A stretch of DNA of 64,000 nucleotides from Thalia democratica (lineage: Eukaryota): contig OZ241829.1 of the NCBI GenBank assembly GCA_965202585.1, forward strand, positions 1,178,001 through 1,242,000, in the 5' to 3' direction. A program made the position numbers and the translations under genes. Of this stretch, positions 9,601-60,803 are shown piece after piece; position 1 is the first letter of the stretch; every line of letters starts with the position of its first letter. The notes beneath the pieces were generated by a model, which saw only the letters and a list, made by a program, of their open reading frames with translations, was not told the origin of the DNA and searched no databases.

Positions 9601-10754
9601 TTTTAAATACTTAAAAACTGATTATTTACATTCAAACAAGTCAAACCTGCTGAATCTTTTAAGTAAGTCTATCTTCAAACTCTAAGTTAAATAAACTTCT
9701 GTAAAAAAAAACTTTGAAGAAAAAAAAAACGAGTTAATATGGCATATAAATTTTGTAAAAATACTAATCCTTACAGAACAACCAAACGTGCTCAAACACG
9801 ACATCGTACCAACATTCAGATTTTCAACTTTCGTACGGACCCTACTTTCTGGATCTTACTGGGATTTTTAGCGAGGTGAAATCTCACAATGATGAGGAAA
9901 TTGCAGAGACTCTTGAATATAACAGAAACTTGAATTCAACTGAACAAGGTTGATTTTTTTACTCTGTTTAGTTAAAGTTTAGTTAAAGTTCTGATTTATC
10001 ATCATGTATGTAATGAAGTATATATAAGCCTAAGTGTTGCTTAAACAATGAAAAACTTGATTAAGTTTTTTTAAACTTTTTGATTGTAATGGGGACTTGT
10101 GTGTATAAATTTATAACGTTGTTTTTAAAATGGGCTTTTAGTCTTTAGCGTTGTAAGGACTGTTATATTTTGTATTAAAACTTGTATTCATAAAACTTGC
10201 TGGATAAGTTCTCAACAAGCATGTATTGAAAATAAAATTCTTCTTTCTTTTTAGACTGTAGAAATGTTACAAACTTACTTGAACATTTTATAGCCTAAAA
10301 ACATTTTCATCAATGAAAATAAAAATTCACTTTTTAACTCAAACAATTTACTGTAAGATGGCGCCCACTTGCGACAAGCAGCCATAGCGGCAGGGGTGGT
10401 GAGCGGGACCTTCTTCCTGGTTGCCATGGCAGCAATCGTGCACGTTGTCAGGCAGAAGTGTCACGTGGTATTCAGACCAAGCATCAGTTTCAAGGAGGAC
10501 AGAATCCAGCCTGGATTCGCGTTTGTACTGAGTTGGTTTTTGTATTTGATGTTTATATTTTTACATTTTGAATATCAGTTTGCAAAAATGTACCTTTTAA
10601 TTTGTTATAACTAACTTGATTTTCAGGTTATTTTTTGTATTATTTTGTATTTATTAAAACTCTATCATTTTCAGGATCTTCAAATGACGTTCCCCTTGTT
10701 GATTTCGAGAACGGAGACCCAAGCAATCAGAAAAACTATAATTCCTTAAACTAA
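3566..10754 (+). CDS. ZP (zona pellucida) module type I transmembrane protein, 9 exons, 411 aa
   Basis: Exons 3566-3620, 5342-5565, 5936-6072, 7553-7658, 8575-8696, 9356-9521, 9777-9948, 10358-10531 and 10675-10754 sum to 1236 nt with all phases compatible. Signal peptide MIYKFLQSAVILSTSFALG. ZP-N Cys1-4 (VTCKPETIDV, DSCVAQ, TDCGT, YENTIY..ITCLY). ZP-C motifs (AYVQIK, RVDKCYAS, DNSCTSD, WKFDMFKF, ITCIMTSC..GEC..QTC). EHP-like SYGPYFL, TM helix AAIAAGVVSGTFFLVAMAAIVHVV, tail ending NYNSLN*. The donor at 10532 is the least certain junction. Confidence 0.88.
5342..5565 (+). CDS. ZP gene exon 2 (ZP-N, Cys1-3)
   Basis: ttttctatcag acceptor; ECATDEICVTCKPETIDVILP...SCVAQ...DCGTLKH; donor GTTAGT; overlaps track ORF 5368-5613. 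Confidence 0.9.
5936..6072 (+). CDS. ZP gene exon 3 (ZP-N end)
   Basis: ttttacag acceptor; TSEKLRKYENTIYFYSTLKDEITLIKNITCLYNGAESFEVISSHK; donor GTGAGT, phase 2. Confidence 0.85.
7553..7658 (+). CDS. ZP gene exon 4 (linker and ZP-C start)
   Basis: aatacag acceptor; SHETRAGHKASLQIFRGPFYSDLTNINLMAFPSLK; ends at a GC donor (AAA|GCAAGT). Confidence 0.82.
8575..8696 (+). CDS. ZP gene exon 5 (ZP-C)
   Basis: atttcag acceptor; NKFPAYVQIKFEPRLDFVNQIRVDKCYASSPFENHTFFDN; donor GTATGA, phase 2. Confidence 0.88.
9356..9521 (+). CDS. ZP gene exon 6 (ZP-C)
   Basis: tttccag acceptor; CTSDNDATVELVENIQDHYRWKFDMFKFKYYVTRVNYITCIMTSCETAGECAETI; donor GTAAGT. Confidence 0.9.
9777..9948 (+). CDS. ZP gene exon 7 (last ZP Cys, EHP, stalk)
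   Basis: ccttacag acceptor; NNQTCSNTTSYQHSDFQLSYGPYFLDLTG...NSTEQ; donor GTTGAT, phase 1. Confidence 0.82.
10358..10531 (+). CDS. ZP gene exon 8 (transmembrane helix)
   Basis: GAHLRQAAIAAGVVSGTFFLVAMAAIVHVVRQK...; GC-rich island; the donor GTTGGT was chosen for phase compatibility. Confidence 0.8.
10675..10754 (+). CDS. ZP gene exon 9 (cytoplasmic tail and stop)
   Basis: cattttcag acceptor; SSNDVPLVDFENGDPSNQKNYNSLN*. The phase-0 frame is also open for 24 codons, so the frame is not proven. Confidence 0.65.
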
Positions 10755-14138: not shown

Positions 14139-14228
14139 TTATCTGTTGGCCCTGGCTCTATTCAGTCTTTTTTCGAGATGGTTGATTTGTAGCTCGTTTT
14201 CTTCAATTCGATCAAGAGCTGTTCTCAG
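14139..14228 (-). CDS. LRRFIP2: LRRFIP last coding exon
   Basis: attcaaacag acceptor; [29 protein letters not shown]. Confidence 0.93.
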   Translation of the reverse strand: MRTALDRIEENELQINHLEKRLNRARANR

Positions 14229-17200
14229 CTGTTTGAATAAAATAAATTTACAAAAAATCTTACAAAATGTAAAAGTTAAAAAAAAATATATGAAAGCACA
14301 CAGTAAGATTAACTACTAAAGACTTATTCAATAAGTTATACTAATTTCGAGTTTAGTTCAAGCTTTAAAAAATGCTGGTCATGTAATACTTAAAAAAAAA
14401 ACACTTTATCAAAGACTGTATGACAAGCTTAGTATTACAATAGTTTTTCAATGTTATTTATTTTTTTAGTAAAATATTTATTTTTAATTACATCTCTCTG
14501 AAGTCTTCTCTTTTCAGCACGCATTTCATCTTCATTTTTTTCGAGATTTTCACAAATTTGTTTGTTTCTTGCTAATTGCACCTCACATCTTGACAACTAT
14601 ATCAAATTATTATAATTTAAAATCAGTGATAAAAAACTCCACATTTGATAACTAACTTTCATAGCATAACACTGAGTTAGTGGTATCATTTGATGTACTA
14701 AAACAATCTCCTAGTGTGTTTTGTTTGAAATCAAACATTGATTCATATAAAAAAAGTAAGATACTGTATAAAACGTTCAGATGCAGGGTTGCCACTCTTT
14801 GAGTGAGAAAACAATCCAGAAGAACCAAAACTGCCCCGAGTTATCCTGAGTTTTTTCAAATTTTCAAAAAATTAATAAATTCAAGTCCTTAAACAGATTT
14901 GGATATAAAATAATAAAATATTAAAGCTGAATGAATCAAATCTGATTTAAAGTATATAAATAAGCTGTCCTGAAATTAAAAAAAAAACTTTTCCGAGTCA
15001 GCCTGAATGTGAGACAACCCTGCATACCCCAATTATTATTTGAGTTGCCATTCTTTTAGTTATTGGTCTGAATTTCTGGGTAGCCTTGAAAATTGCTAAA
15101 AAACAAAAATTTCTGTAACAAAAAAAAAAACAGTATAAAGCTTTTAATTAATTATATGCCTCTTATTTTTTGTATATAGTTTTTCTTAGAAATTGCTACA
15201 TTAGGTGCAAGAAAAACAACACTAAAAAAGATTAAAAGTTTAGTTCAAATTTAGGGAATGATATAATTGATAAACTATGTTTTAGACTATTTTTATTCAA
15301 TTTTAAATTTAAATAAATAAGCTAGCTTCAAGGAGTGGCAATTCTGTATCGTGTAAATTAAAAACCTTGAAGTTTATAACAGTTTCATTTTCATAACACT
15401 TAAAGCAACAATACAAATAATTAAAGTTAACATAACTGAGTTTTAATTCTAAAATAAGATATATTTTAAATTAGATATAAATGTATTAATTTGTTTTTAG
15501 AATGTAGATTGTTGTATATATAAAAAATAAACTAACACTGGTTTGTAGAACATGTTGGGTTTGTTCGCAATTTTGTAACTTTATTTTGTATTCACCAATT
15601 GTTTTATTTGCTTCGCCTGTTTGTAAAAATCACACATATTAGTAAGTATTTACAATTTCAAGTCAAAAAATTTAGACAAAAATTAGCTTTTTATTCAAAA
15701 CAGGGTTTCTCAAAGTTTTGCAAAACGACCCTTTAAAAAAATTAAAAAGCTATGACACCCTCTAAGTAGTTCACAAAAAACTAATCTTAAACACGCCGAA
15801 GCCCAATTATTTTGCTCTTCAGAACATCTAGTGTAAGCTTCAAATTATGGCTTTAAGCCCCCTCCCCTATTTAGGCCCCTTTATTAATCACGCCACACCC
15901 CCTTGGCAGCTTATGGTCCCCTAAATTTCTGAAACGAACCATTTTGGGAAACTCTGATATAGACTTTATACAGTTGAATGTACGCTTTTGAAGTTTTAAA
16001 AATTTAAAACAGAAAATGGCTTTTGATTTTATCTAACATGAAAAATCAACAATTGCTTTGTAAAACCCTTCACACCAACTTATATGGCCGTATTTAAATT
16101 ATACTAAGACAAAGTTATACAGAATATGTGTACAAAATACGTTTGAAAATGTACTATTAAAACATAAAACAAAAAAAAATAAATTGCTTGTTTCAAAAAG
16201 TATCAACAGATAATACTGAAAAGTAACAGCATTGCAGTGAACAATTTATAACAAATATACAGTTTGACTTCTTAAAAAACAACTACTAAAAATTTGAATA
16301 AAAACATTCGCTAGTCAACAGTAAAGAGCACACTCAATTTATTTTAAATTATAATTTAAATCCTATCAAGTAATCCTGTTAATAAACAGCGTGAAAATTC
16401 TGTTTATAAGACATTTTCAAAGTCATTTTTGTTACGTAAAACTTATTTTATTAAAAAGTTTAAAAAGATAAATTTATATTTTGAACCTCATACAATTTAC
16501 TTACAAAAACATCAAAAAGTTTACTATCTTTAAAATAGCAAATCAAATTGTTAAATACTTTTTTACTTACAACTGTACAAAAAGTATATCTGAATTCTTT
16601 TACTTAATGATATAACTAAAAATACACTAAATAATTTATTCCAAAAAAAAAACAACCTACTACTCTGCATTGATTCAAATACTAATAAGCTAATGATGTG
16701 CTGAATAATTTAACAAATGTATAACAGGGTTTCCCAAACAGGACCCCTTGGGGTCCATCACAGAATTTTAGGGGGCCATGAGCAGTAAAGGGGCCACAGG
16801 GGGCATGAGGTCATAAATTGAAACTTATCTCAGATATTCTGGATTTGATGAAGAAGAGCAAAAAAAAGGTTTTAGGTGTTTTTAATTGTAATTTTTTGAG
16901 AAATCTTTTAGGAGGGGGCCTTTTGAAAAAGTTTGTGAAACCATAATGTATAAACATTGAAAGTTTCTCCATTAATTAAAACACTAATAAACTAATAATG
17001 TATCAATTAATTTTACAATAACTTATAAACATCAAAAGTTTCAAACTAACGCTGAATTTCGATAATTTCCATTTCAATTTGATGTTCATTTTTACCTCCA
17101 TTCACCAAAAGTTCACTTCTTTCTTTTTCATTCAAGTCTCTTCTCAGTTGTTTTATCTGTTTATATAATTATTGACATTAATTTATTGTGAAAAAAATAA

Positions 17201-20200
17201 TTTTAATGTTTATTCAACATACACTTTAAATTAATTTACTCTGTCTGTCACGTCGATATACAATTTTAGAATAAAATTAGTTGCTAAAATTTTTTAATTA
17301 TATATAATATTATTTTCATACTTTTGGGTTCTTTTGAGAAAAGATTTAGCTGTTTTTAATGGTAGCAAAGTAAACATATTTATTTGCTTTAATTTTAATA
17401 CAACTAAAAATAATTGATACTTACTTTGTGATAATAGCTTTTGCAAAAATTTAGTTTAAACATTTTTTCGCAGTTTAACATTATAGGTTGCTTTTATAAT
17501 TTTGCAAATTTTTGCTTAAGAAAACGCAATTACAAAAAATCTGGGAAAATAAGTAAAAAATTTTTTAATTAAGTTTGATTTGTTGCTTTTTTAATATAAA
17601 TTTATTGCCAATATAATCAATTCTGTGGTAACAATACTTCAAATTAACAATGTACTATATCATGTTACATTTAAACTTTATCACAAGTTTTGTTTTAGGT
17701 TAGATAATGAACTCTCAAATTGTTTTTATAAAGTGTTTTGTTAAACTAAGTGCGGCAGATTTTAACATTAAACATTTTTATACAACTTTACTGATAAAGT
17801 GATTTATTTTTGATTACTATATTAAATTTCAATGACAATTTAAAAAATTCCATACGAGTATGTTTCACATACTATTATTTAATTATTTAAAAACACAATT
17901 ATGTTTAATACTAAGGTAAAACTTTACATACTTTTTAATAGTATAAAGTAAAATAATGTAAGCTAATAAATATTTTTTTTATAATTTCTTGCGTTAAAGT
18001 AAAAAAAAAACTTAATTAAAACAAACAAACTTGATCAATTAGATTGTCTTTTTCTTTTGCAATATTCTGTAAACGTTCATCTGTTTATTAAATTTTTAAT
18101 GTTTAGTCATATGTAAGTATTCTATAGCATGATTTTATTTTTAAAAACTGTAAATAATTTAAAAATAAAGTTGATTTAGCAAAACACTTGAAACTTACAA
18201 AACTATTTTGGTAGAGTTTTTAAAAGAATTTTAACATCCTGAAAATAATTTAAAATTAATCATACTTTATTACCTTTTTAATAAAACAAAAAAAAAATGT
18301 TAATCAGTTTTTAATTATACTTGGCTTCTTAAAAAAAAAAAATATTACGAGCACATATGATAATAAAGTGACAGCTTAAAAAAACATTTAACATTTTTAT
18401 ATAAAAAGTTATAAATTAGAATAATAAACACTCACAACGACCTGTGGTTTTCAAGTGAAAAATAATTCTAAAATACTTAATATTAATAATTTACACCTTT
18501 TTAGCCCATCTAAAGCCCTTTGAATATTTTTCAACAATTTTTCACGCCATTTACAGTTATAATAACCACAATTTAATTAATACGATACTTTCAAAAAAAA
18601 CATTATTGAAATGCATCTCAACAATAATTTTTACCTAAAGAACCATCTCCAGCGTGTTCTAGCATTTTGGAAACTTTATATTGTTTTATAATATTTATTA
18701 CTATTCAACACAAACCTAATGGTCCATCACCAGCGTGTTCCAACAGTCTAGCAGCTTTGTGGTTGACAATAGCGTACGTGGTCCTCTCCGATAATTCCTG
18801 ACTGTTCTGATTGTTTTCCTGAGCATTTTCATTTTCCTCAGTTATTTCGTCCTGTCCTATCATCTTGATTCCTTGTTGCTGTTTTGAGTTTGTTCACTAC
18901 TGTTTAATTATGATTATAACTTTGGTCCACAGGTATACTTTGTAATAAATAAGTTTTTAAGCCATCTACTTAAAAAGTATTTTAATGTTTAATACATCTT
19001 TTGAAAAACTTTCATCATAACTGTTTGTGTAAGGTTTTTTTGTATATATTTTTCGGTTGCAATTTTTCATTTTCTTGGGCATCCAATTTTCAATTCAATA
19101 TTTCAAGTTGGCATTAAAAATAAAAACTCCCTTTAAATAAGATAAGACATATAAAAAAACAAAAAAATGAGACTTAAAAATGAAAAGCAAACGTCAAATT
19201 TTATATTTTTGTTGTGTCTGGTGCATTTATAGCATTATGACGACATACTGACATTATCATGTGTGAAAATTCAGATGAGAAATAAAACGTTGTCTGGAAA
19301 TTTATTGAGTTTATGTCAACATGTAATAACAATATGGTTTTCAAAATCAACATGTTTTATTAAAAAAAAGGAGAGTGCATAGTCTTTCATTTTAATAAAT
19401 GTTAAAAATTAATTCATACATGAGATTAAGCTAAATTATGTAAAAAAATATCTTAGTTAAAATTTGATTGAATTTAAATGTATTTATTTAATACTATATA
19501 ACCTCTTAAATTTTTTTTGTTAATGACAAAATGTTTTATAGAAAAAATATTCGATATACATAGTAATTTCAGCTATAACTTGAGCTAAATTATTTGAGAA
19601 CAATTAATACTAATTGAATATTTAACACAATGTTATATGTGCACAGCAAAAAGTCTTAGGATGAAACTATAAGCAATGAATATAAAGCAACTTAGTTAAC
19701 GTACTGAAAAAAAAATTCAAAAAATAATTAATGTAGAGACTTCTATTTGTATACGAATCATTTTTAATTTCATTATATGCTTAAGTTTTAAGACTAATAA
19801 ACTTACTTCTAAAAATAAAACAAATTAAAAAACAACGTTAAAGGTAATTGATCTAATTTAAATTTTCTAAACTAAATAAGAATTTTTAAAAACTTTTAAA
19901 AATTTACAAAAAAACGTTAAAAAATTAAATTAAACGCTCGGAAGAAATTGATTAAACAAATTTCAAACAAATTCGTTCTGTTTTACTTGTGACGTAAAAA
20001 AGAAATATCGAAGTTTTGAAAATGAAAACTTTTTCGCTTTGATGTTTTTGTGAAAAGTTGTGATATTTGAGATGTAATTTTTCACGCCAAGTTTTGTTTG
20101 TAGTGTGAAAACAAAACAACTTATATAATAGTTTGTTTCTTAAAAATCAAATATGAAGTGAAAACTTAATTTGTTTAACTTTTATAAATAGAATTTTTTA

Positions 20201-23200
20201 ATACACAGAAATAATATGTTTTTTTTTTCTATACAATTTTTTACAAAACTTTATACGTTTTAATGTGTTAAGACTATTTGGAGTTCAAGTTTAGAATTTA
20301 AACTTATTTTATTATTTTAAACTAATCATTTTTACTGAATTTTTTTAATTTAGATTTAATCCTACAACTGTCAATGATTTAAGCTTTTTATTGAAGAATG
20401 CATCTACATTTCTAAATATACTTTATTTACTACTTGTTCAACACTATGATACCAGTTTAACATTAAACTATTGTGAAACAGTAATATAATTACTGTTTAA
20501 CACACATTAAATTTGTTAAAAATTTGTATATATATAATAAACACCTGAATAATTTCGTCTCTTTGTTGAAGAGCATGTTTCAAATCAGCATTTCTTTTCC
20601 TCAATGTACCAACCATTCTCTTTTGTTTTTCTAATTCCTAAATTACATAAAATACAATTATCTAAAGTGAGTACTTAATAACTAAATAATCAAAAACCTT
20701 TTAAGGAATTTTTTTCAAATTATATTATAAAACATCAGTAGTAGTTTTGAGCGAATAATTTTATAAATATATTACATTGTATGATACAGTTTGATCGAAT
20801 TTATCTCATCAAAAAAAACATGTCTGTAATAAAACTCATAACTGTGTAAACTATTTCTATAATTTTAAATCTAAATAAACTATACAAATACGAAAAAACT
20901 AAAAAATTTCCCAGCATGACTATTTGGTAACAGAATTTACATTCAAACTAATTCACTTATTGTTTTGTTTCCCCAGAGAAATAACTTAAACAATTTTTAA
21001 TTTAAATTACCAAATTTATTACAAGAAAAATTATATTCAAATATAGTCACAACAAAAATAAAAGAGGAAAACACATACTTTGTATACTAAAACCAACTAA
21101 ATCTGATTTTAAGGTTAAAAACATAAGACATATAAATCTTTTAAATCAATAACGTAATGTTTTAAATGTAAAAAAGGTTATCAATAAACAAACGCGTGTG
21201 AAATAAAAGATAAGAACTATTTTTTATCATAACACCCTATGACAGATAATTGCTCAGAAAATTAAATTTTCATTTAATTTCAGGTGATTACATAGCCAAT
21301 TAAATATTCATTTACAATCGTAAACAATTTTATTGTATATCATATCAAAAAAGAATTAAAACATAAAGTTGTGGTACAATTTAATTGTTTGCTTATCCAA
21401 TTAATTTTAAAACATAATATTAAACTTTTAAGCTATGTATTACTGAACAGATCTTTTTTTGCTGTAAACTGATTGTATACTAACAAATAGTTTAAGAAAA
21501 AAATAAATTGAAAAAATCATGCGTTTTGCATTACCTGAATAGATTATAGTTTTTGTTTGGTAATAATGACACCTCATTAAAAAAAAATAAACTTCTGACT
21601 GTAAGTTGATAAAGTTAACTTATTTCAAAACCTTAAAATTAAAAAAAAATTGTTTGATAAGATAATATTTTAACAGCAAACAAATAAAACATTTTCAATA
21701 AATGTTTAAACTTCAGGCGTTAACTTTATAAATTTTACAACAACAAATAAAAAGCAGTAATAGTTCTAAAGAGAAAGTCATTTTAATTATCTTATTTTTA
21801 CATCACATATAAATTGTCGCAAAATAACCACATGTTGTTAACAAAAAATATAAAAATAAAAAATTATGTAGTACTATTTTCAGAGTTAAATATAAACAAA
21901 ACAATAAAACTATTGGAAATTAGATGTACAAAATTTTTATGTTTGAAAATATAGACTGTCTGAAAATAAATCTTATTTTTGCATAAATCCTGAAGTATAA
22001 TATATACTTTCACTTAAGAAATTTTGAGAATTTTAAAACAATCAAAATTGTTGAATAAAAATTGTTAAAATATTCAATTATGTGAAAATAAATTTTCCAA
22101 TACACACCATGTTTTGACAAGTTCAACAAAAAAACTTTTTATTAAAATCTTTGAGGTTTAGTATAATAACAGAATGAACAAATTAAAATTAAATTTATAT
22201 ATATTCAAGAAACATCACGTCTATGAGCTTTAAAAAATTTTAAATACACAAACTAAATACAAAAAAGGTTATATATAATTTTAAAAAATGTTGTATTTAT
22301 TGAATATAAAAATTTGAAATATTGATACAACTTAACAAATTACTATCACGTCTTACTAAAATACCAACACAAAATAAACCGATATTTTTTTAAGTTTACA
22401 CTGTATATTTATTGAGGACGTGTATAATGTAAAATTTAAACGTTTAGTATATTGATATAACAAAGTTGTGTTTGTACCAATACACAAACTGAAAAATAAA
22501 AATATGTTAACATAGGAAACAACAAAAAGAATTAAATTTCATTAACAGTAGTTTCAACACGTTTTTACATTATTAAAAAGTTTTTAGTATACAACGTATT
22601 TTTTCTTAAAGTTGAAAAAAAACTATGGAAGCGTTCAATCCAGGGTTGCCAAAGAACTTTTATAAATTATTTCCAGGTTTTCTTAATTTCTTTCAGATTT
22701 ACTTAAGTACAAGCTTTTTGGTTTACTTTTTGTTCAAAATTAGTTTAAGGTTAATAACTGTCTTTAATAGTATAACAACATTGAAAAATTACTGAAAAGC
22801 TACTTTAAATGTGTTTTTTAGTAAAAAAAATTTTAATGATAAAATAAATCATCTACATGACAATTTTTTTGTGTCTAATCAAAATTTTATTCTTCAAATG
22901 TAAAAATAGCTTAAAATTTCGTAGCTTAAAAATTTTTACTGATTTTAGTCTAAAATTCAAGTTTTTTTTTTCAGAACTCCTAAAATTACATGTTTTTCCA
23001 AGCTTTTTTTCCCTAAAATGTCAAATTCCAGGTTTTTCCAGGATTTCAGATTTTTTGGCAACTCTTTAAATTAACAATAATTACAAAATTTTTACTAAAA
23101 ATTTATACTGACAAAAAAAATTATTAATTAAAACTATTCTACCGTGTCTTTATAGTCGCTTCACGATTTTGGAAAAAGTTGGCACTTATGTATTTAATAA

Positions 23201-26200
23201 TTTTTCTTTTAAAATAAAGTGTTACAAGTAATTTTTATTGGAAATTTTCAAAGAATTTTAAATGAATTTATTGAAAGTTACAAAAATTCTTTATTAACTA
23301 GGATAATTAAGTACTATTTTAGACTAAAAAATGAAAATTATTATAAAATTAAAAAAAAAAAATTAACTATAGCATACATTTTTTTTGTTGAAAACATTTT
23401 TTAAAGTATATCAATTTTAGAAAAAATACTTAAACACAAAGCTTTAGAACTTAATTAATAAGAAAATTATAAGGAAATGAAGCTAAAGTTGTTTTAATTT
23501 AGAAAACTAAAACAACTTAGGGTTTTGATTATAGTGTGTTACATTATAGCTAACAAAATGTAGTTAGATGTCAAATTATAAAACATTAATAAAATAAAAA
23601 CTAACATGACATTTTTTCTTGTGTTCACTTTTTAGTAAGTACATTTCATCGTCATGCTCTTCAATAAAATCTTTTAATTGATTCACCTAAAAAAAAGATA
23701 AATTCACTTTTATTTATATTGTACACTTACAACGCTTTAAAACTAGGATTGTTATAATAAACTTTATTATTTTGGTAAAATTGTATTTATTCTTTTAACT
23801 TGATATACAAATTGGAATTTTATGTTTTTAAATGATTTATATCATAATAATATATTGACAAAACACTTATAAACAACACCACATAAAAGATTTAATTATT
23901 CATACTAACCATACGAACCACTTTAAATAACTTTGAATACATTTATTCTATATATATTATCATAAAACATAATTAATTACTTTTATAAAATAAATTTTTA
24001 TGATAAACAGATTTAACCTTCTATACTCACCACAAAAATCACCTAAGCTTATCTTATAAATATGAATAACTTTTACTATTTTAAATAACTATTATTTTTA
24101 TTTATTTTTTTATTGCTAACCATAAAAACCTCTTTAAATAATTTTGAATACATTTATTGTATATATGTATTATCGTAAAACTTAATTTATTATTCTAATA
24201 CATGAAATTTATACACTTAAAAAGTTTTAACTATCTATAATCATCACAAAACCACATAAGCTTATCTTGTAAATATGAAATACTTTTATTGTTTTTATTA
24301 ATTTTTTTTTATTAATTAGATAAACCTGATAAACAAGTTGCTGTTTCTCGTTGTCAAGAGAGGCGTTCTGCATCATTGATTTCTTATATTTATCCTCCAA
24401 TAAGGAAAGAGCTTCCTGTAAGAGTAAAATATTAGTTTACAAAAAAGTACTTGTTTAATTATTTTAACACTTCAATAATCTTTATTAGATAGCTACAAAT
24501 GCATAATTCTGTCTTTTACTTTTAATCATAAAAACTAAAAAATAATAACCCACTGTGGTTTGGTGTTTTTTATCCCTTAAAATTTATCTGATATAGTTTT
24601 TGGATGGTGTTTATATACTTAAAATCTTAGCTATTAATAAATATTTTTGTTGTGGAATACTTAAAATCTTATAGATTTAGTTAAGTTTACTGAAACATTT
24701 TTATTTATATAATTGTGTTTTTTAAATATAAAAAATATACTAAAAGTTAGAACAATAGAATAAATTACTTTATAATTAAAATTGAAATTTTAATCTTTAA
24801 TTTAGTATCATAGATACGGTTAGCTAAAAAATTTCATAATATTTTGTTTTGTTCAGTTTAAAATACAATGTAACATACCTAGAATATAGTATAATATTTA
24901 GTACTTACTACCAAACATATTTTTTATATTTTGCTGAGCTGGCAGTATTTTATACATTACAAAAATAAATTAATAATTTTTCAGCTTGAATAACGTAAAG
25001 TATACTAAAAATAACATGTTTTATTTTCATAAATCGTGTTTATTTAGACAACTAGATGAAAATTCTTACATAAGTAATAACATTACATTAAACTAAAAAT
25101 GCATTTAACTATACAAAACTTTACAAAAACATTTTTTTAATATTTAAAGTTATTATTTGACTAAAATAATAAAAACATCTTTAAAGGAAATATAATAAAA
25201 CTTATTTAGTTCATGGACAAACATTGTTTTTAAAGTTAAATAAAAAAAATTCTAAACAAACTTCTTTTTATATGCTTAATAATATTCAAACAGAATATGA
25301 AGTAAAAAACTCCCTTATTAAAAACTTACTATATTTTCACACATTGGAATATTGTGAGACTTATTAACTTATATATTGTTATTGAATTGATCTATTAAAC
25401 TTTTATATAACTTTTGTAAGTTCACATGAGAATATTATTTTTGAGGGAAAGTTTAAGAAATACTTTATATCACAATATTTAAAAAGATAATTTTATTTAT
25501 TAACAAACTGGACCTAACTTTCATTCAGAGTTTTAGGCAGATTTATTAATAACCAAATCGTTTCAGTTTAAACTTTGTTTATTTTTTTGAAATTTAATAT
25601 CAATATAATTAAATATAGTAAAAGTAAACATAAAAATTATTTATCATCATTAATATTATACAAGTAATTAAAATTAAAAAACTTAAAAAAAACAGTTATT
25701 TGTACTCAAATAAGATAATGAAAACTACAATTTTAATTTTTATGGTAGCAACTTTTTCTCTCAATAAAGTAAAATCAAATATAGCAGACGTCTATATATA
25801 GAAACGCGGAAATTCCACATTATATCAAAGTAAAACAATTAACAAACTTCTAAAAACTTCCCAGACAATACACGTGATTACAAAGCCGCCAAACCACCGA
25901 CTATACATTTGTGTTTTGAATTTATACAAAACTTATTTTATTTTTTGTGCAATATGTTATATAGTAACAAACACATAAAAGTTTAAAAAAAAGTCAGTGT
26001 AAACGACTACATCAAAAGCAAAAAAATTATTAAAAAAAAAAATTATTCCATAAATTTTGTAAATAATTAGTTTAGTTTGTCTTACATTAAAATTGTGCCA
26101 TTTTTTATTAAATTATGTTTTTAGCCTTTATACTTTGTAACTAGCATACAGCCCTAAAGGTAAGCGGTTGAATAGTGATATATGCATCTAGTTAAACAGT

Positions 26201-29200: not shown

Positions 29201-32200
29201 TCAATGACGTACTTTGATAAAATAAACTTAAACAAAGTATGAAGTTTTAGTTTTACATTGAAAGAAATTGTTGTATATTAATTTTAGTACTAAATTAATT
29301 AGTATTAGTATTGTCTCCGAAACAATTTTTGTTTTAAAGGAATACTCTTCAAATATACCTTATATTCATTTTAGTAACTCCCAATTTATATTTAAAAATA
29401 AACTTTTCTTTTAATTTTGGAATGATGCCGTTTCAATAGAAGAAATTTAAGTGTCATAAAACTAAAAATATAAACTTTACTTTTATTAGAAGCGATTGTT
29501 TCGTTGTATTCAAAACGTTAATATTTAAAATAACTAGCAGGTTATAGCTGTAAGTCAAATGTTTGAATGTGTAAGCAGTTTTTTAACTTTAACTAATTTT
29601 TAACACACATTTTTCAGCACTAAAAACAAATACAGTAGTAAAATGCAAAAGTGACATTATAAAAGGTCGTTTTATTATTTCAAGGTGTGTTTTCATAGTA
29701 CGTGGTAGATATTGTTTACATCTTTTATTTTACGTAAAGGTCAAGATCACACTTGAAAATTACTTACAAAAAATTAAAACATTTTATAAAATAACTAAGT
29801 TTATCAACATGAATAAAGAAAGTATTTAATTATTTTGTATAACAATAGCAATCATAAAGTTAACTGTTAAAATAATTAAGAAAACTGCGGCTAAGACTAA
29901 AGCTGTATAATAAAATTTCAGACGATATAATAATGACAACTATTAAATCTATCAGAAATTATAATTTAAACTTGATCTTTGAGTGTTTCATAACTTGAGG
30001 AACTCCAACAGATTAAAAACACTCCAAAAATCAATTCACACTTGCTAATTTAAACTTAAACTACTTAAAGATTATTTTACATGGGTAAGTTAACTTACTT
30101 TACAAATTTATTTTATTTTATTTAACTTTGTACAAGTTTTTAACCAACTACTAATATACACTTAAATATTTAAAAACTGCCAGCTCTAAGCTTAGTCTCA
30201 GATACTTCTTACCATTTTTAATTTTTTTTTACTTTTTAATATTTTTAAATACTTTTAAAAACAACCAACCCTGAGTTCGCTCTCTGTGGCATTGTCAGTG
30301 TTGATATTCGAGATGTTCCCGTCAATTTTGTAAGAATTTGAAGAACTGATTGAATGCTGGATTGATGATGTCGACTTTATTGAGCTCTGTTGTTAATTAT
30401 GAAATCATAATCTTTTATATCGTATTAAAACAGTATTTTTTAAAAGCTAGGTCAAAATGAATCTATACTTGTAATATACATAGATTGTTGCAAAAAAACA
30501 TATTTTTTTTCTGTATCTCATTAAAATGTTTTCTAAAGACGCTATGTCAATTTAAAGTTCATATAAACATTCTATTTGAATAAGATTTATTTTTGCACTG
30601 ACGAGGTCTTTGACCAAAACTTAGTTTGTAAAATAAATTATTGAAAGAATAATTTCATAAACATTAATAAAACAACTCTAAGCAACCGAAAACTGGTATT
30701 CTAAAGTAGCATCTGGCGAACTTGCGTTCAGTAATTTTGCTTTTAATAATTTATCGAGAGCTGAAGTTATAAAAAGTTTTGTGATGTCATTGGTTTTTTT
30801 CAAGGTAAAACCTCAAAATATTGCAAAATTTATTAATATTGTAAATTAAGTATTGAATATCGTGCAAAAAGCGCAAAATAAAAATATTTAGTAAATTGAA
30901 CGTAATATAAATATAATAAAGTGTAAATAACAAAGTTGTATATTATTAACAAAACAAATTTGAAGTAAATTTAATGTGTACGTAATTCATGTATTACACA
31001 TGTAAACATATGTACTGAACATGTATATTCCACTAAGTTGGATAAATTATTTTATAAATACAAAACAAGTTCAAAATGCTATAAGTAGTATTATAAAACG
31101 AAAATACCAAAACCTTAATTACAGTCACATTTCACTGCACACTACAGATAATGTATTGCATAAGTATTAAGAACAAATATAAAGAAACGAAAAAATAACA
31201 ACAAACTTCTGTAAGAAAAAACTATTTATTCATTTTGAAAAGAATGCAATAAGTACACAAAGCAAAGTAATTGTTTACTAATTTGTAAATATTTACTAAT
31301 AATCTGAAAGTTCAATGACAAATAACACAACATACATATCAATTAACTAGTTAAATATTTACGACATTTCAAAAGTATTCAATTTATTTTTGTTGAAATT
31401 TTCAACAAAACAAATAATTTTACATAAACAAAAACCATAACTTATTTAATCATAGATTTACAATTTTCTATTGACTCTCTTTTTATCAAAGAATTATAAT
31501 AAAATAAAAGTAATATTTGTTTGTAATAACAATGATGAAAAACATATTCATCACACCATTTGATTTTTCAAGCTTTGTACCAAATAATACTTTTAAGCTT
31601 TTCTTTCAAAAACCTAAGTACTCTGAAATTAATTATCAATGAGATCATATCTATATTATTTACTTAAAAAACTACAGTTTCACTTACTAAAATCTACTTA
31701 GTTGCTTAGTTTCTGACAACAATTTACTTACATTAGTATTTTATTTTGAACTTTATACTTGTGTACACTATTTTCAACAATGTGTAATAACTCTTAGTTC
31801 TATATTTTTAGTTATAACTAGTCTTATTTACATTTATGAACTTTCTATGTAACATAGTATGTTATTTCAAAACTTTTTAAAATTATTTGTTATCTAACTA
31901 TTGCGTACTTTATACTTTAAAGGTGGCAATTAAAGTTCTCAACTTGAATAAAATAAAAGGAGATTGATCAATAATAAATTTTAAATTTTAATTATTATTC
32001 TATTTGAATAAGAATTTAAACAACTGAAGATCTCGTCTTTAAACGAGTGAAAATTTTTTTTGTTTAATAAGATTTAAAATTTATTATTGATTAGTTATCT
32101 AACTATAACAAATATCTGAATTTAATCCAATTTTTATTAACTTTGGTAAAGTATTTGAAACTAACCATTTAACTTTACAAACAAACTCTTTTTAACAGCC

Positions 32201-35200
32201 CATTTTTAATCCTTTCTAGTTTCTTGTTTAATAATAATAAACATTTATATAATATATTCAATTACAAACTAACCCTCTGTTTAGCGGCCCACTTTTTACC
32301 CTTCCTAATTTCCTCCTCCCTCTTATTAGCCAGCATAAAACCCCTCATGACATTCAACATGTTCCTCCTCTCCTCCACAATTTCCTCCAACGCTTGCTCG
32401 TACCTCAACCGAGCTCTTATCAGCGACACTTTGTCTTTAGTGTCACATTCATCTGTAGAATTGTCGCTTGTGTCTTTTTCCACTGAAGTTTTGTCATCAA
32501 TGTGACTATTATCGCTTTCTGTGTCTATTTTTTCACCTTCCAAACCTTCTGTTGTGTCACCTGGTAAATTGACACCAGTTTTGCTAGGTGTCGAACTGTC
32601 TTCAGTGTGAAATTCTTTAGTGCTGTCCGGTGGGGTTTCAATCATGGGAGTCAGTCGTTCTTCTACAGCTTTCCGTGGTTGTTCTACAATTTCTTTACAA
32701 GTATCTGTTGCAACTGGACTTGGATCATTTTGAGCATCAGAACTGTTCAAGTTTGCCTCTGAATAGAAATCAATATTTGTGCAATCATTAACAACTTCAA
32801 CATTTTGTTGAAGCACAGTTGGTATAACTTTAGTGAAACCACCACTATTAGTTTCAACTTGAGACTGAATTTTAGAACTATTCATAGTTTCCACGCCGCT
32901 TAACATCTTAGTACTTTCAAGAGCTGTCTGCAAAGCCTTCTTCACGATATTTTCACTGTACATCTCGTATTCGTAATAAGACTGAACTCCTTTATCTTCA
33001 GTACAGCTAGAAGTTTGAACCGACTTCTCATCAGTGTTCCTGTGATTGCTCATAATCACTGCTGCTTCGTTCAAACCTTTCTTGATAATATCCTCTGCAA
33101 TCACTTCAACACTGGGCTTTCTAACAATTTCTTCAATAATTTCTTCAATAACGCACTTTACTTCAACCTCAGTTTCAAGTAACGCGTCCTTATACTCCGA
33201 ATCGCTGTCATCGAAATTATCGCTCAAAACGTAACTGTTGCTCACTGAACTCGAGCAACTGCTGTCAACAAACTCCTTGCTACTTCCAACCAGCAACCTG
33301 AACTCAGCGTCTGGAGTTGACTTGCAACTGACAAAATTGTTGCAAGTGTTGAAGCTGCCTTCGCTTGAATTACACTCTGCTGCTGCTACTACTTGTTGGT
33401 GGAAGCTCGGATTAATGTTTAACTTCATGTTCAAATTGTTTGCTGGGCAAACACCGGAGCCTATCTCCTTTGTTACGTCACAGTCGGGTGTGCTTTCGAA
33501 TTGCTTTATTGCGTCATCGAAGCATTGTGACAGCAACTTGTCAGCGAAATCAGAATATTTTTCAAATAAATGGTTTGTTTCAAAGGGGGATTTGTCCTGC
33601 AGGTCGCAGTTTGATGTGACATCACAATTCGGTTCGCTTTTGCAACTGGTGACGTCACAAAGAGCATCGGTGGACCAACACTCGCTGGGTGTCGCAAGAG
33701 AGGTGCGCATCAAGTTTTCTCCCAACTTGCAAACAGTGAACTTATTTTCTGTATTTTCTCCTACACCTTCACAAAAATCTTCATTGCTCGTATTTTCATC
33801 GGAACTTTTGCTTTTTTCTTCTGTTTCAACTTCTTCTAGTTTATTCAAAGACAAATTTTCTTCTGAATGGCTTTTATATTCGTGTAAACTTTCATCATTA
33901 GTTTTAACATCTTCTAACTTGCACACGGACATATTTTCATCTTTCGACAAATCTTTAGAAACTTGCTCAGTTTTAGGATCTTCATCAAAACTCCCATCAT
34001 TTCTAGTTTCTTTCAACAAGCTCAGAGATTCAGTTGGTGCGAAATTTTCAAAACTGTCATCAAGTTCCGCTTTCAGTTTGTCCAGGGAGTTCGAAAGACT
34101 TTTTATGGCTTGTTTTTCTTCCTCGTTCAAAGCTGAAGGTACTGGAATTTCCATTGGCAGAGTTTCTTTTACAGAGCTTTCAATTTGTGCATCACTCACA
34201 TCCTCAGGTAGATCTTGCACCTCATTCTCATCACCTTCAAGATCCAGTGTGTTCTCTTCGGTGTTGATATTACCACTCAGCAACGAATCTTCAGTGTATT
34301 CGGGAGTCTGCAACGAATTCAAAACTTCAGAATCATCACCCACATTCCGATACAACCCGAAAATATTTTGATCGCTCTCATGATCACACCCGATGACGTC
34401 ACCCTCACTCCTGCTCAGCTTCCTGCTTTTCTCACCCAAAACCTCCTGATTGCAACCCGTTTCCTCGACCAGGTTGTTCAAACTCCTGTTCCTGCTTATC
34501 CTGATCCTCCTCAAAAGCTCGTCCCGCTTCTGCTGCTCCACCCTGCCGAAGCTCTGGTTCCTCCTGATAGTTCGCAGGTTTCGTCTGGGGAATTCCCCGT
34601 AGGTGTGAAGCGACTGGGTGTCCTGCTTACTGTCGTGGTTCTTGTTGTTTTTCTTCTTTTTGTTGTTTTGTTTCAGTGACGAGCTGCTGTTGTGTCTGCT
34701 GTTCTCGTTTCCCATTTGTTACTTTTATTATAGCTGACGATATATTGAAATTTTTTAACTCTAGTTTTGTTTATATAACTTACGTTTTTGTTGGTGTTAT
34801 TTATATTGAACAACTAGGAGACCTTAATACGCTTTTATTTCCTTTTGTAACTTTTTATTTAGTTGACGTCGGCTTAACAAATCGCTAATAAAACATGCTC
34901 TGTTATAATACTTTTGTTCAAATTTCAGTAGAAGAACTAATGTGTAAGACATAAAAATATAAGAAAAAGTTTATTTTTATTAAAATGGAATAACTAGCTT
35001 ATAGATAAAAGCTTTGAGAGAAATAAAACTACAACTTTTTTAAAATTCTTCAGAAAAATATATATAAGTTATAATTATTCATAGTAATATATACACCTTA
35101 TATGTATTTTGATAAAATAAAGTTTTATTTTTATGCTCAAGGAAAATGTTAAAAATAAATATTTGTAAATTTAAGCTATATTTTACAAGTATTTTATTTT

Positions 35201-53200: not shown

Positions 53201-55913
53201 TCAAAACTAATTAATAAATACCGTGGGAGTTAAAATATTTTTCAAACAAGCTTAATTTAAATAGCACTAATGAGGCTTAATATATAGATTATTGCCTGAT
53301 AAATAAATTTTATTAAGTTTTGTTTTGTTTCAAAATTGAATAAGACATCTGTATTCATAAGTTAGTCGAAACAATTTGAAAAGTAAGCTTACAAATTGAA
53401 ACAATTAACCAACTTTTGTTTGTCATGTGGCTGAATTTAGTAGCATACAAAAATATATAAATCACTTTTTAAGTTCAATAAAAACTATATCAAAATTATT
53501 AATGAGGATAAGAACTAAACTTAATCTTAAAGCAAAAAGTTTTAATAATATAAAATACTATTTAAAAATATTTTTAAAGTTAATTCTAACCTTATAATTC
53601 CACAAAAAAGTAAACTTTCTTAACAGAGATTCTAAAATATCTTGGAACATTCTACTTTTCATCAATTTTTTATGCGCTTATCACACAAATATACAACTTA
53701 TAAAAGGTTTGTGAGCGTTTATAAAGTATAAAAATTGAAAATAAATAAACAATATAGAATTTTGACTCCCTAGTTTATATACTAAATTTCTTATAAGTTT
53801 ATCCTTACAATAAAAGCCTTTGTATTAATAAACTTAAATTTTTGAATAACATACAATAAAAAATATCAGAACTTTAATACACATCAATTAAATCATTTTT
53901 GTTTTAGGAAGTATTATATTACATTTTACTTTATGCCATGTAGATATACAAGTATTTACTACAATCTATTAGCAAATAACTGAGTTTCGCTTTTTACATA
54001 TTATAAAAAAAATTAACAAGACTTATATATCTAATTAGCGCTAATAATTCCATAAATAACACATTAGATATTTAAAAATAGTAGTTTTAGAAAGTAATAA
54101 ACATCATATTCTTAGAAAATAAATATAAATCATATTTACTACATAGTAATTGTATTGATAAAAATAAACGGACTAGTAACATCAAACTAGTGCTGATGAA
54201 TTGGAAAAGAAACATTCAACTACTTAATATGAACAATAACTAATAAACTTTTAAGAATCTATCATTTTTCGTTGTATTTTTCTTTTGACGGTTAGTTTAA
54301 ACGTTCAAGCATACTACCTATTTACTATCAATAAACTACTTAATAATACTACACAATAAGATTGGTATTCTGCACTTTAATATACTTACATTGTATTACC
54401 AATAATAAACAACAAACTCTTACGGTTGCCTTTTAAAAATGCAATATGATTACTGTATATGTTTTAGTATATGTTCTAGATACAACATAATATAACCTTG
54501 TCAAGATTATATTTCATTTTGTATACATAATTCTGTCATATACTACAATACTACATTTTATCATTATTATTTATTTATTACCTCTCTCTGTTGTCTTTCC
54601 AACTCCCTCATTCTGATTTCTCTTGCTTCAATTCGCGCTGCTCTTTTCATTGCAAGTCGCGCTTCGGCCTGTGTGTAATAAATAACGTTATATTAATTTA
54701 ATTAACTTTTACTTATATTAGGTGTACTAACTTATTAATGTTATTTATTAATTTATTATGTAACTCTTGCTGCACGTTTGATTGCAAGTCATGCTTCAGC
54801 ATGAGTTAAATAATATACTTCAATAACAGTTTTGAAAAATGATAGCAACAAAATGTGAAAAAATGCAATCTTTCTTGATAATGAGTTTAAACATACTGAA
54901 TTAGTTCCACAACTATATACATATATATCTATCAAATTAAAATAAATACCTTAAGAAACTATTTAGAGTTTTTTAACAGTAAAACTACAGTCCAAAAAAT
55001 ATGTTCACAAACTTATATTGTTATCAAACATACAACTTGTTTTTTATAATTTACCTAGACTTAAGACAAGCTAGTAGTATATTGTACTACTAATAAATTT
55101 TTTTTAAAGTGAACAAAATTATAAATATAGTCTTAAACTTTTTTAAACATTTAAATCTTTGCTAAGCTGCACCTAACTTTTACCAGATAAAACAAATTTT
55201 TCATGAAACCAAGCTGTCAATAATTGTGAAACTTGTACTAAATTTAAGCAAAATATATAAAAAAAACATATTGTGTAGAATATCTTCATTTAAAAAGTAA
55301 GGATGACCCACCTTAAAAAAAATTCCAATAAAAAATATTAAATATACTTTAATTGAGTGCAAATTAATGTACTTTATGTTTTAACTGACCAACATATCAT
55401 GAACATTTTATTCAAAATTAAAAACATTTTGATAATTTTTAAGTTCAAAATTATACCTGTGTTACAAAAACAATTTGACCATCTTTATAAGAATAAGGTT
55501 TTTAAACATTATTTAATAAAATATTCATCTTTTTAACTGAATTCAGGCTACTTCGATAAACTACTTGTCAAAATTAAACCAGTAAACAGTGTATATGTTC
55601 TAAGCTGTAAACAAGTAAACAACCTTTGAACTTAAACGCATTTTAGTAAACAAGTCAAAGCCAAAAAGTAAAAAAAAAACTAATACATCACAATTAGAAC
55701 AAAAAACTTTGATTATCACTTCAACATAATTTATCACTTAATAAGATTATAAAGTTTATACCAAAAGCCTTTGTGAAAAACAATAGACAATACCCAAATA
55801 AATTTTCAATTAATATTAATATTTTATACCTCTTTAGCAATCTGATTGAGGGTTTCATCCTCCATATTCTGAGGTCTTCCACTCCTACGTTTTGGATTGT
55901 GGCGTGTTGACAT
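14139..55913 (-). CDS. LRRFIP2: LRRFIP1/2 orthologue (leucine-rich repeat flightless-interacting protein); canonical isoform about 385 aa
   Basis: Exons 55913-55830, 54668-54582, 45531-45520 (microexon), 30386-30270, 24415-24326, 23686-23606, 20637-20545, 18878-18716, 18080-18031, 17156-17051, 15616-15537, 14596-14492 and 14228-14139 sum to 1158 nt in frame. Recognisable LRRFIP blocks: [11 protein letters not shown]|[29 protein letters not shown]; [26 protein letters not shown]; [10 protein letters not shown]; [24 protein letters not shown]...HLEKRL. The symbol reflects closest remembered similarity; this is probably the single co-orthologue of LRRFIP1 and LRRFIP2. Confidence 0.95.
14492..14596 (-). 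CDS. LRRFIP2: LRRFIP exon
   Basis: [35 protein letters not shown]; AG/GT flanks, phase 0-0. Confidence 0.93.
14784..15022. mobile_element. MITE with CAGGGTTG TIRs
   Basis: CAGGGTTGCCAC at 14784 and GACAACCCTG ending at 15022 (the inverted match extends to ATG/CAT flanks); no TSD recognised. Confidence 0.65.
15537..15616 (-). CDS. LRRFIP2: LRRFIP exon
   Basis: (R)[26 protein letters not shown]; phase 1-0; donor GTTAGT. Confidence 0.92.
15701..15956 (-). mobile_element. hAT-like MITE family 1, inverted copy
   Basis: TIRs CAGGGTTTCTCAAA and TTTGGGAAACTCTG; internal gctcttc..acatctagtgtaagcttcaaattatg is the reverse complement of the core in the 16725 and 60383 copies; TSD not preserved. Confidence 0.75.
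16725..16945 (+). mobile_element. hAT-like MITE family 1 with 8-bp TSD
   Basis: Left TIR CAGGGTTTCCCAAAC, decayed right TIR GTTTGTGAAACCATA, perfect 8-bp flanking direct repeat ATGTATAA (16717-16724 and 16946-16953). An 8-bp TSD is typical of hAT. Confidence 0.85.
17051..17156 (-). CDS. LRRFIP2: LRRFIP exon
   Basis: [35 protein letters not shown](R); phase 0-1; donor GTTAGT. Confidence 0.9.
18031..18080 (-). CDS. LRRFIP2: LRRFIP exon
   Basis: (D)[16 protein letters not shown]; phase 1-0. Confidence 0.9.
18635..18673 (-). CDS. Candidate duplicated 39-nt LRRFIP exon
   Basis: (V)[12 protein letters not shown] with donor G|GTAAAA; paralogous to the last 13 codons of the exon ending at 18716 and separated from it by 42 nt. 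Confidence 0.5.
18716..18878 (-). CDS. LRRFIP2: LRRFIP exon
   Basis: [11 protein letters not shown]...[20 protein letters not shown]; phase 0-1. Confidence 0.92.
20545..20637 (-). CDS. LRRFIP2: LRRFIP exon
   Basis: [31 protein letters not shown]; phase 0-0. Confidence 0.92.
22641..23066 (+). mobile_element. MITE family 2 (CAGGGTTGCCA TIR)
   Basis: CAGGGTTGCCAAA and TTTGGCAACTCTT ends; subterminal TCCAGGTTTTTCCAGGA and internal blocks shared with the 60108-60803 copy. Confidence 0.78.
23606..23686 (-). CDS. LRRFIP2: LRRFIP exon
   Basis: [27 protein letters not shown]; phase 0-0; donor GTTAGT. Confidence 0.9.
23905..24314. repeat. Diverged direct tandem duplication, 2 units of about 200-210 bp, intronic
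   Basis: Units start with CTAACCATA at 23905 and 24116 and share ctttaaataa.tttgaatacatttatt and taagcttatctt.taaatatgaa. Confidence 0.85.
24326..24415 (-). CDS. LRRFIP2: LRRFIP exon
   Basis: [30 protein letters not shown]; phase 0-0. Confidence 0.94.
30270..30386 (-). CDS. LRRFIP2: LRRFIP exon (Ser-rich; first exon common to all proposed N-termini)
   Basis: [39 protein letters not shown]; phase 0-0; donor GTTGGT; the SELR end matches LRRFIP2. Confidence 0.85.
30585..30638 (+). ncRNA. Minimal type I hammerhead ribozyme motif with G12>A substitution (Penelope-type relic)
   Basis: ATTTATTTTTGCA-CTGACGA-GGTC/TTT/GACC-AAAA-C(TTA)G-TT-TGTAAAATAAAT: stem I, CUGANGA core, 4-bp stem II, 2-bp stem III, GUU cleavage triplet; the conserved GAAA reads AAAA. 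Confidence 0.62.
32274..34715 (-). CDS. Giant alternative first coding exon of LRRFIP (814 codons; acidic, disordered, N-myristoylation motif)
   Basis: Track ORF 32262-34715. It starts MGNENS with an in-frame TAA just upstream. A phase-0 donor (CAG AGG|GTTAGT) at 32273, three codons before the ORF stop, matches the phase-0 acceptor at 30386. It lies inside the LRRFIP locus on the same strand. Coding status is clear; attachment to LRRFIP is inferred. Confidence 0.8.
41267..41335 (-). CDS. Candidate short alternative first coding exon of LRRFIP
   Basis: ATG-initiated, 23 open codons [23 protein letters not shown], ending at a strong phase-0 donor CAG|GTGAGA; CpG-containing island within AT-rich intron. 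Confidence 0.5.
41444..42126. mobile_element. Non-autonomous DNA transposon with TTAA target site, Kolobok-like
   Basis: TTAA|GGCATAGGGGGGAGGTCC and GGACCCCCCCTATGCCC|TTAA. TTAA TSDs with purine-start termini fit Kolobok better than piggyBac (CCC start). Internal inverted repeat CTAAAAATCTATCTTCTCC / GAGGAGATAGATTTTTAG. Confidence 0.8.
45520..45531 (-). CDS. Candidate 12-nt LRRFIP microexon (FDRK)
   Basis: catatactttgcag|TTTGACAGGAAG|gtaagt; phase 0-0; gives QQRE-FDRK-S, resembling QQKE-LDEKS of LRRFIP2 as I recall it. Confidence 0.6.
54582..54668 (-). CDS. LRRFIP2: LRRFIP exon 2 (conserved N-terminal helix)
   Basis: [29 protein letters not shown]; canonical AG/GT flanks; phase 0-0. Confidence 0.96.
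54762..54800 (-). pseudogene. Dead partial duplicate of LRRFIP exon 2
   Basis: gct gaa gca tga ctt gca atc aaa cgt gca gca aga gtt = [12 protein letters not shown] versus [13 protein letters not shown]; no AG acceptor; premature TGA. Confidence 0.75.
55830..55913 (-). CDS. LRRFIP2: LRRFIP canonical first coding exon
   Basis: [28 protein letters not shown]; donor GAG|GTATAA, phase 0. Confidence 0.93.
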
Positions 55914-60107: not shown

Positions 60108-60803
60108 CAGGCTTGCCAAATGTTTTTGGAAAATTTTCTCCAAGTTTTCAAAATTCTATACAGGTTTTTAAAATTACATGTTTTAGTGTCTACTTTTAGT
60201 TTAAATTTTAATCAAGTTAAACATAAAAAACTGTGTTAAACAGCATAGCAACATCAAAAAGATATCTCAAAATTTTTGAAAATGTGCTTTTTAGTAAAAA
60301 AAAACTTTTGATGAGGATAGAAAATGTTTAACTATATGATAGATTTTAGTGTCAAATTAAAATTTTACTACTAAACATGTAACCTTGGGGGCCATGACAG
60401 ATACTCAGGGGGCCATGAAGTAAAGGAGCCACAGGGGGCCATGAGGTCATAATTTGAAACTTACACTAGATATTCTTGAGTTGCAGATGAAGAGCATACA
60501 AAAAAAAAGTTATAATGATAGTGATAGAAACTTAGACTAGATGTTCTCGAGTTGCAGATGAAGAGCAAAAAAAAAGTCTTAAGTTTTTCAATGGTACTTT
60601 TTGAGTAATCTTGTTGAAGGGGGCCATGACTTTTTAAATTTCTTAAAAGGGGGCAAAAAAAGTTTGGGAAACCCTGATGTAACAGTTGTTCAAAACTCCA
60701 GGTTTTTTTAAAAATTTCCAAAGTTCCAGGTTTTTCCTGGATTATTTTTAGCCTGAATTTTAAATTCTAGGTTTTCCAGGATTCAAAGTTTTTTGCAACC
60801 CTA
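60108..60803 (+). mobile_element. MITE family 2 copy carrying a nested family 1 insertion
   Basis: CAGGCTTGCCAAA and TTTTGCAACCCTA ends; TCTCAC direct repeat on both flanks; interior colinear with 22641-23066 apart from the insert. Confidence 0.75.
60383..60676 (+). mobile_element. hAT-like MITE family 1, nested, left TIR deleted
   Basis: Intact right TIR GTTTGGGAAACCCTG; flanked on both sides by ATGTAAC; interior matches the 16725 copy and has an internal duplication of gaaactta.actagat.ttct.gagttgcagatgaagagca. Confidence 0.8.

Follow-up and report, generated by a model that had tools for sequence, protein, structure and literature searches.

The window analysed here, a 64,000-nucleotide stretch of Thalia democratica DNA, carries on its minus strand an open reading frame (ORF) of 817 codons that lies inside an intron of another gene. 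This raises the question of whether the giant ORF is a gene in its own right, or whether it supplies an alternative beginning to the protein encoded by the gene around it. The frame runs from an ATG at 34715 to a TAA at 32264-32262, as given by a list of ORFs and read base by base, and its codons just before the ATG are TAA (34721-34719) and CAA. Two features define its extent:

32274..34715, minus strand: coding part of the putative giant exon, 814 codons, beginning with the ATG (34715) and closing with AGG (32276-32274); single copy, with two metatranscriptome relatives
34719..34721, minus strand: in-frame TAA, two codons 5′ of the ATG, which closes the frame to any upstream exon (base reading)

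The base composition of the ORF sets it apart from its surroundings. It forms a G+C island of 37-42% against a window background of 20-26%, with introns at 22% G+C. Because 817 codons remain open, and do so as a G+C island in DNA this rich in A+T, the frame cannot be a product of chance. The encoded polypeptide is acidic (pI 4.55), with a net charge of +7 over residues 1-50, +6 over residues 51-100, and -9 to -16 per 50 residues over residues 101-200. RRNQS is found at residues 51-55, RKLS at 98-101 and a Ser-rich run at 10-13. The ORF itself, its MGNENS start, the KKKKNNK, RRNQS and RKLS motifs and the acidic body had all been described in a first-pass annotation of this DNA, and each can be read in the sequence.

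Database comparisons indicate that the giant ORF is under selection as protein. It is single-copy in the 802-Mb assembly, and phmmer, run in full against 1.84 billion representative proteins, returned only two relatives. One (P0001, 103 aa) is 85% identical to ORF residues 289-390, and the other (P0002, 180 aa) is 71% identical to residues 451-613. Both carry the source label 'merc' and ERR run names, which place them in a marine metatranscriptome catalogue. They differ from the giant ORF by substitutions and whole-codon gaps, with conserved blocks alternating with variable ones, and they cover neither end of the exon. On the basis of these 85% and 71% identical fragments, their codon-wise gaps and their metatranscriptome origin, the giant ORF is a real, selected coding sequence that a close relative transcribes and keeps as protein. 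By the same comparisons it is restricted to its lineage.

Transcript collections bear on the ORF in a similar way. Two marine RNA runs contain 5-6% of the sampled words of the giant exon, and a run of 47 million letters from the same organism contains 78% of them. For DNA sequencing of an 802-Mb genome the latter would be too small, and thus it is probably a transcriptome. No contigs encoding P0001, P0002 or the giant ORF are on record. Metagenome contigs, in collections unlikely to hold this animal, yielded no match either to a protein scan or to the exact 24-nt pattern of the 32274/30386 junction discussed below.

Beyond the two relatives, the phmmer search found no annotated protein in any organism that resembles the giant ORF. 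Thus, the isoform that the first-pass annotation could not place in other animals is not already annotated in sequenced relatives. Pfam gave no match to the ORF, LRRFIP included, a sequence search of the PDB gave nothing significant, and ESM Atlas feature searches with the whole ORF and with residues 500-625 gave no usable match. A word-based homologue search with the whole ORF also returned none; low-complexity words probably swamped its candidates, and the full phmmer search supersedes it.

The surrounding gene is identified as LRRFIP by Pfam matches to PF09738 that are colinear on the minus strand. Positions 1-29 of the profile match at 54668-54582 (E 4e-10, 39.9 bits) and positions 92-119 match at 24415-24326 (E 1e-7, 32 bits). 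Weaker colinear matches fall at 20637-20545 (positions 147-177, E 0.024) and at 15614-15537 (positions 279-297). The gene thus matches the family profile above its curated cut-off and in order along its length, and a scan of the whole genome with PF09738 returns the same two exons (54668-54582 and 24415-24326). The matches lie on either side of the giant ORF and on the same strand. The earlier assignment of the host to LRRFIP stands. The gene model is as follows, with a slash marking the boundary of exon and intron:

55830..55913, minus strand: canonical LRRFIP first coding exon, which starts Met-Ser-Thr-Arg, ends ...NQIAKE and has the donor GAG/GTATAA (gene model)
54582..54668, minus strand: canonical exon of the N-terminal helix, both ends in phase 0 (Pfam LRRFIP positions 1-29)
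30270..30386, minus strand: first common exon (39 codons, rich in Ser), both ends in phase 0; putative acceptor for splicing from the giant exon (splice sites)
24326..24415, minus strand: LRRFIP exon (Pfam positions 92-119)
23606..23686, minus strand: LRRFIP exon with the donor CAT/GTTAGT (gene model)
20545..20637, minus strand: LRRFIP exon (Pfam positions 147-177)
18716..18878, minus strand: LRRFIP exon, end phase 1 (gene model)
18031..18080, minus strand: LRRFIP exon (gene model)
17096..17156, minus strand: LRRFIP exon, short form; a second donor, C/GTTAGT, 45 nt further on gives a longer form (gene model)
15537..15616, minus strand: LRRFIP exon with the donor AGT/GTTAGT (Pfam positions 279-297)
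14492..14596, minus strand: LRRFIP exon (gene model)
14139..14228, minus strand: last coding exon, stop codon included (gene model)

The ten exons from 30386 onward were all placed with splice sites, and the first four of them (beginning at 30386, 24415, 23686 and 20637) are in phase 0 at both ends. The exon at 30386-30270, which lies between acag/ and /gttggt, is open in frame 0 only. In the region 17051-17156 (minus strand), the donors G/GTAAAA and C/GTTAGT, 45 nt apart, are both in phase 1, and either keeps the frame. The giant ORF lies in a 24-kb intron of this gene, on the same strand, 19.9 kb from the helix exon 54668-54582 and 1.9 kb from the exon 30386-30270.

Several further properties of LRRFIP splicing signals were noted in this gene. 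Seven of its twelve donors (30269, 24325, 23605, 18715, 18030, 15536 and 32273) have T at intron position +3, in the hexamers GTTAGT, GTTTGT, GTTGGT and GTTTAT; most animals prefer A or G at this position. Its acceptors are mostly A-rich (aaacag/), not pyrimidine-rich. At 18635-18715 (minus strand), the tail of the exon ending at 18716 recurs ∼40 nt downstream and is followed by its own gtaaaa donor, which looks like a duplicated alternative exon end.

The link between the giant ORF and LRRFIP is suggested by the 3′ end of the ORF, which reads ...CAG AGG / GTT AGT TTG TAA, with AGG ending at 32274. The sites concerned are:

32268..32273, minus strand: phase-0 donor GTTAGT, directly following AGG and three codons short of the stop (splice matrices)
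32262..32264, minus strand: TAA, met only if the donor is unused; reading on to it adds Val-Ser-Leu (base reading)

The phase-0 GTTAGT proposed earlier as a donor is therefore present in the sequence, at 32273-32268. Its quality depends somewhat on the matrix used. With a generic animal donor matrix it is 3rd among 171 GT sites in and around the ORF, and with a matrix made from the 11 other donors of the gene it is 2nd among 146. On this gene-specific scale it scores 7.4, compared with a leave-one-out median of ∼6 for true donors. An earlier matrix made from ten donors ranked it just 13th, with 13 of 146 sites scoring as well. GTTAGT is the commonest donor hexamer of the LRRFIP gene: it also closes the exons ending at 23606 and 15537 and, in its long form, the exon at 17156. 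Within the 2.45 kb of the ORF, the pattern GT[ATG]AGT is found just twice. We estimate a chance of ∼1.5% that a site among the top two or three would lie in the last four codons, and of ∼0.5% that it would also have the right phase. Because the donors of this gene are degenerate, the argument from rank appears moderate, not strong.

Joining 32274 to 30386 in silico fits in phase 0 and yields a single open frame that continues through ten LRRFIP exons to the stop. If the exon at 17156 is taken in its short form, the joined frame comprises 2442 + 930 nt = 3372 nt and encodes 1123 aa. The longer form of that exon adds 45 nt, giving 2442 + 975 nt = 3417 nt and reproducing the 1138-aa product predicted in the first-pass annotation. 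In a structural model, the terminal helix of the giant ORF (residues 755-813) extends to the last residue of the giant exon; the canonical helix likewise reaches the end of the exon that encodes it. Taken together, the site, its phase and the continuous frame make it fairly probable that the giant exon is spliced to LRRFIP at 30386.

The 5′ end of the giant ORF constrains the possibilities further. Because of the TAA two codons before its ATG, the giant ORF must be either a separate gene or a first coding exon, and the helix exon 54668-54582 cannot be read into it. Joined to 34734/34733, the helix exon would read CTA TAA next. The upstream stop had been taken as making the ORF a first coding exon; the stop itself is there, but a separate gene would fit the closed frame too.

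We consider it somewhat better than an even prospect, judging from the sequence, that the giant ORF serves LRRFIP as an alternative first coding exon. The closed frame means that such an isoform would need its own 5′ end. Its transcript would start just upstream of 34715, either from a promoter of its own or by spliced-leader trans-splicing at the following site:

34733..34734, minus strand: candidate acceptor tcgtcag/CT, 18 nt before the ATG, for cis-splicing of a non-coding leader exon or for trans-splicing (score 3.98)

The score of this acceptor is within the range of the real acceptors of the gene, which gives it weak support. The sole promoter-like feature is TATAAATA, ∼85 nt upstream of the giant ORF, and it is unremarkable in A+T-rich DNA. 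If the animal is a tunicate, we infer that trans-splicing at this acceptor is a serious alternative to a separate promoter; a search for a GH6 domain as a tunicate marker, which carries little information when run exon by exon, returned nothing. Translation would then begin at MGNENS, and the donor at 32273 would be joined to the acceptor at 30386. In the resulting product of 1123-1138 aa, the canonical head of 57 residues, which is encoded by two exons and ends in the basic helix, would be swapped for 814 residues. The new head would begin with a basic tip that is probably N-myristoylated and close with a basic helix; between the two would lie ∼650 acidic residues, for the most part disordered, among which a few helices are conserved. 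Downstream, the Ser-rich linker would stay as it is, and so would the LRRFIP coiled coil, such that the Flightless-I-binding coiled coil might be held at a membrane or at the partners of the conserved helices. That the donor is used, where translation starts, the lipid and the localisation are all predictions for this isoform.

The main rival account holds that the giant ORF is a nested, same-strand, single-exon gene within the LRRFIP intron, whose mRNA ends after the TAA at 32262 and in which GTTAGT is a chance occurrence or goes unused. Its product would be an acidic protein of 817 aa with a lipid and polybasic tip, laid out like MARCKS, AKAP12 and AKAP200. This account needs no extra assumption, as the ORF is whole, from an ATG in a good context to a stop of its own, and it lacks similarity to LRRFIP both in Pfam and in a BLASTP comparison with the helix exon. 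Under a loose matrix, sites resembling donors are not rare, the A+T-rich flanks are full of poly(A) signals, and a stop soon past the coding end is expected anyway in DNA of 22% G+C. However, a nested gene leaves the donor exactly at the coding end, in a phase that fits the host gene, as a coincidence. Its own poly(A) site on the same strand would also truncate host transcripts, and its terminal helix would carry an odd Val-Ser-Leu tail. We regard a nested gene as possible, though unlikely; in that case the result would be just a new orphan acidic protein.

The donor at 32273 could instead be joined to a private downstream exon, giving a separate protein that shares just its DNA with LRRFIP. 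The patch at 30661-30766 is an example, as it is a 38% G+C island in the 1.9-kb intron with an acceptor-like ttcag/, from which phase 0 reads five codons and then a stop (TAG). Nonetheless, the patch is short and without coding signal, no relative or read speaks in its favour, and the host gene offers an acceptor of a proven type at 30386, all of which make a private exon quite improbable. By a gene-specific matrix, the best acceptor-like site in the region is ttcagag/GC at 32756, in phase 0, which speaks for a reading in which the last 161 codons form an internal cassette of the canonical isoform, inserted between the helix exon and 30386. We give this idea hardly any credence, since the matrix barely splits true sites from background (leave-one-out scores -0.4 to 14), and the conserved 5′ two-thirds of the ORF would be left unexplained.

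If the giant ORF is the first coding exon of an LRRFIP isoform, the properties of its head become central to what that isoform might do. Five features are relevant:

34695..34715, minus strand: MGNENSR, an N-myristoylation-type start with Gly2, Asn3, Ser6 and no Pro at position 7 (pattern match); the ATG has A at -3 and G at +4
34641..34661, minus strand: polybasic patch KKKKNNK, residues 19-25; residues 1-100 have a net charge of +13 (charge count)
33126..33161, minus strand: second helix fitting the RII-docking pattern, not kept in P0002 (pattern only)
32922..32957, minus strand: amphipathic helix fitting the RII-docking pattern, present in P0002 with one Ile-to-Phe change (pattern only)
32277..32453, minus strand: predicted long helix, residues 755-813, reaching the splice site (AlphaFold2 model, pLDDT 66-80)

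GNENSR fits the N-myristoylation pattern G-{EDRKHPFYW}-x-x-[STAGCN]-{P} (PROSITE PS00008), and judged by this motif the tip of the giant exon is probably N-myristoylated. As in an electrostatic switch, a polybasic cluster lies near the putative lipid site and a phosphorylatable Ser is available (RKLS at 98). The canonical LRRFIP head of this animal begins Met-Ser, and thus is without the lipid motif. The membrane-tethered scaffold envisaged in the first-pass annotation is a reading built on a predicted splice and a predicted start.

The remainder of the head is less sharply defined. A single-sequence AlphaFold2 model of the giant ORF has a mean pLDDT of 46 and consists mostly of low-confidence helices and coil, with the helix at 755-813 as its best part. 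The giant-exon isoform would lack the helix of PF09738 positions 1-29 and have an unrelated basic helix instead. The proposal of a terminal helix descended from a copy of the canonical one was dropped, as BLASTP of the last 67 residues against the helix exon produced no alignment. Matches to the RII-docking 12-mer number two in the giant ORF, compared with 0.41 expected by shuffling (P = 0.07). A predicted complex of residues 572-612 with two SPA17-like RIIa domains from the same genome scored 0.11 against a mark of 0.34, a value that favours neither docking nor its absence; the true PKA-RII-like docking domain of the genome (L007) is split by an intron. Elsewhere in the genome, locus L006 (G000:C7:6582855-6582965) encodes a complete RIIa docking domain in one exon, which is presumably most like that of the sperm protein SPA17.

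The overall layout of the head recalls known membrane anchors. MARCKS, AKAP12 (gravin/SSeCKS) and Drosophila AKAP200 are myristoyl-electrostatic anchors with long acidic disordered bodies. The giant ORF has in common with them a Met-Gly start, Ser6, a Lys-rich patch within 25 residues, a long acidic low-complexity body and short amphipathic helices. However, Pfam, phmmer and PDB searches found no sequence similarity to them, and none of the three has an LRRFIP coiled coil at its end.

LRRFIP proteins connect Flightless-I, Dishevelled and MyD88 with signalling and with the actin cytoskeleton, and are regarded as cytosolic. The T. democratica gene resembles LRRFIP1 and LRRFIP2 (PF09738) in its basic N-terminal helix exon, Ser-rich linker, coiled coil and colinear Pfam matches. 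It also has a run of phase-0 exons that suits mix-and-match splicing, and known LRRFIP genes have many splice forms and several 5′ ends. It differs in that the putative alternative head has 814 residues, is acidic and is unrelated to anything annotated. In vertebrate LRRFIP1 a large acidic exon lies at the 3′ end, and some vertebrate LRRFIP heads start Met-Gly-Thr and might fit the lipid pattern too. No paper found in the literature connects LRRFIP with myristoylation, with a giant exon at the 5′ end or with isoforms in tunicates. In fly, a single LRRFIP gene, CG8578, encodes a protein that binds Flightless-I (bioRxiv 10.64898/2026.06.02.729301). In shrimp, three different LRRFIP 5′ ends have been cloned (PMC3585381). 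The earlier description of an isoform switch unlike that of other animals thus applies to the putative giant acidic head, which is new, but not to the switch itself, as alternative 5′ ends are ordinary in LRRFIP (PMC3585381). The novelty lies in the size and content of the giant exon.

An isoform with a lipid-anchored acidic head of 90 kDa would, if it exists, put the LRRFIP coiled coil at membranes, and a conserved scaffold would have gained a new address by way of one large, fast-evolving exon. A more ambitious picture, which we offer tentatively and regard as doubtful, is that in this pelagic chordate relative one gene yields two LRRFIP scaffolds, a cytosolic form and a membrane form, the latter with a lineage-specific head of 814 residues that is lipid-anchored through its myristoyl-polybasic tip and bears a conserved RII-type docking helix. 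Kinase anchoring would then meet Flightless-I binding in a single protein, whose transcript is perhaps trans-spliced within the intron.

Other parts of the window contain additional sequences of note. A neighbouring gene on the plus strand, at 5300-10620, has an exon at 9345-9584 that encodes a ZP-C domain (Pfam E 6.5e-5) and a G+C-rich exon at 10357-10611 with a stretch resembling a membrane span. One short G+C-rich sequence (its translation reads ...SWPPVAPLL.GP...) is present in two introns, at 16685-16830 and 60330-60480 (minus strand), and is probably a dispersed repeat. At 62350-63801 on the plus strand are three overlapping open frames of 100-180 aa that have no Pfam match. One of them includes a Cys-rich stretch followed by a ...IGSTARNFKTRYNEH... 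motif, which recalls the GIY-YIG nuclease modules of mobile elements.
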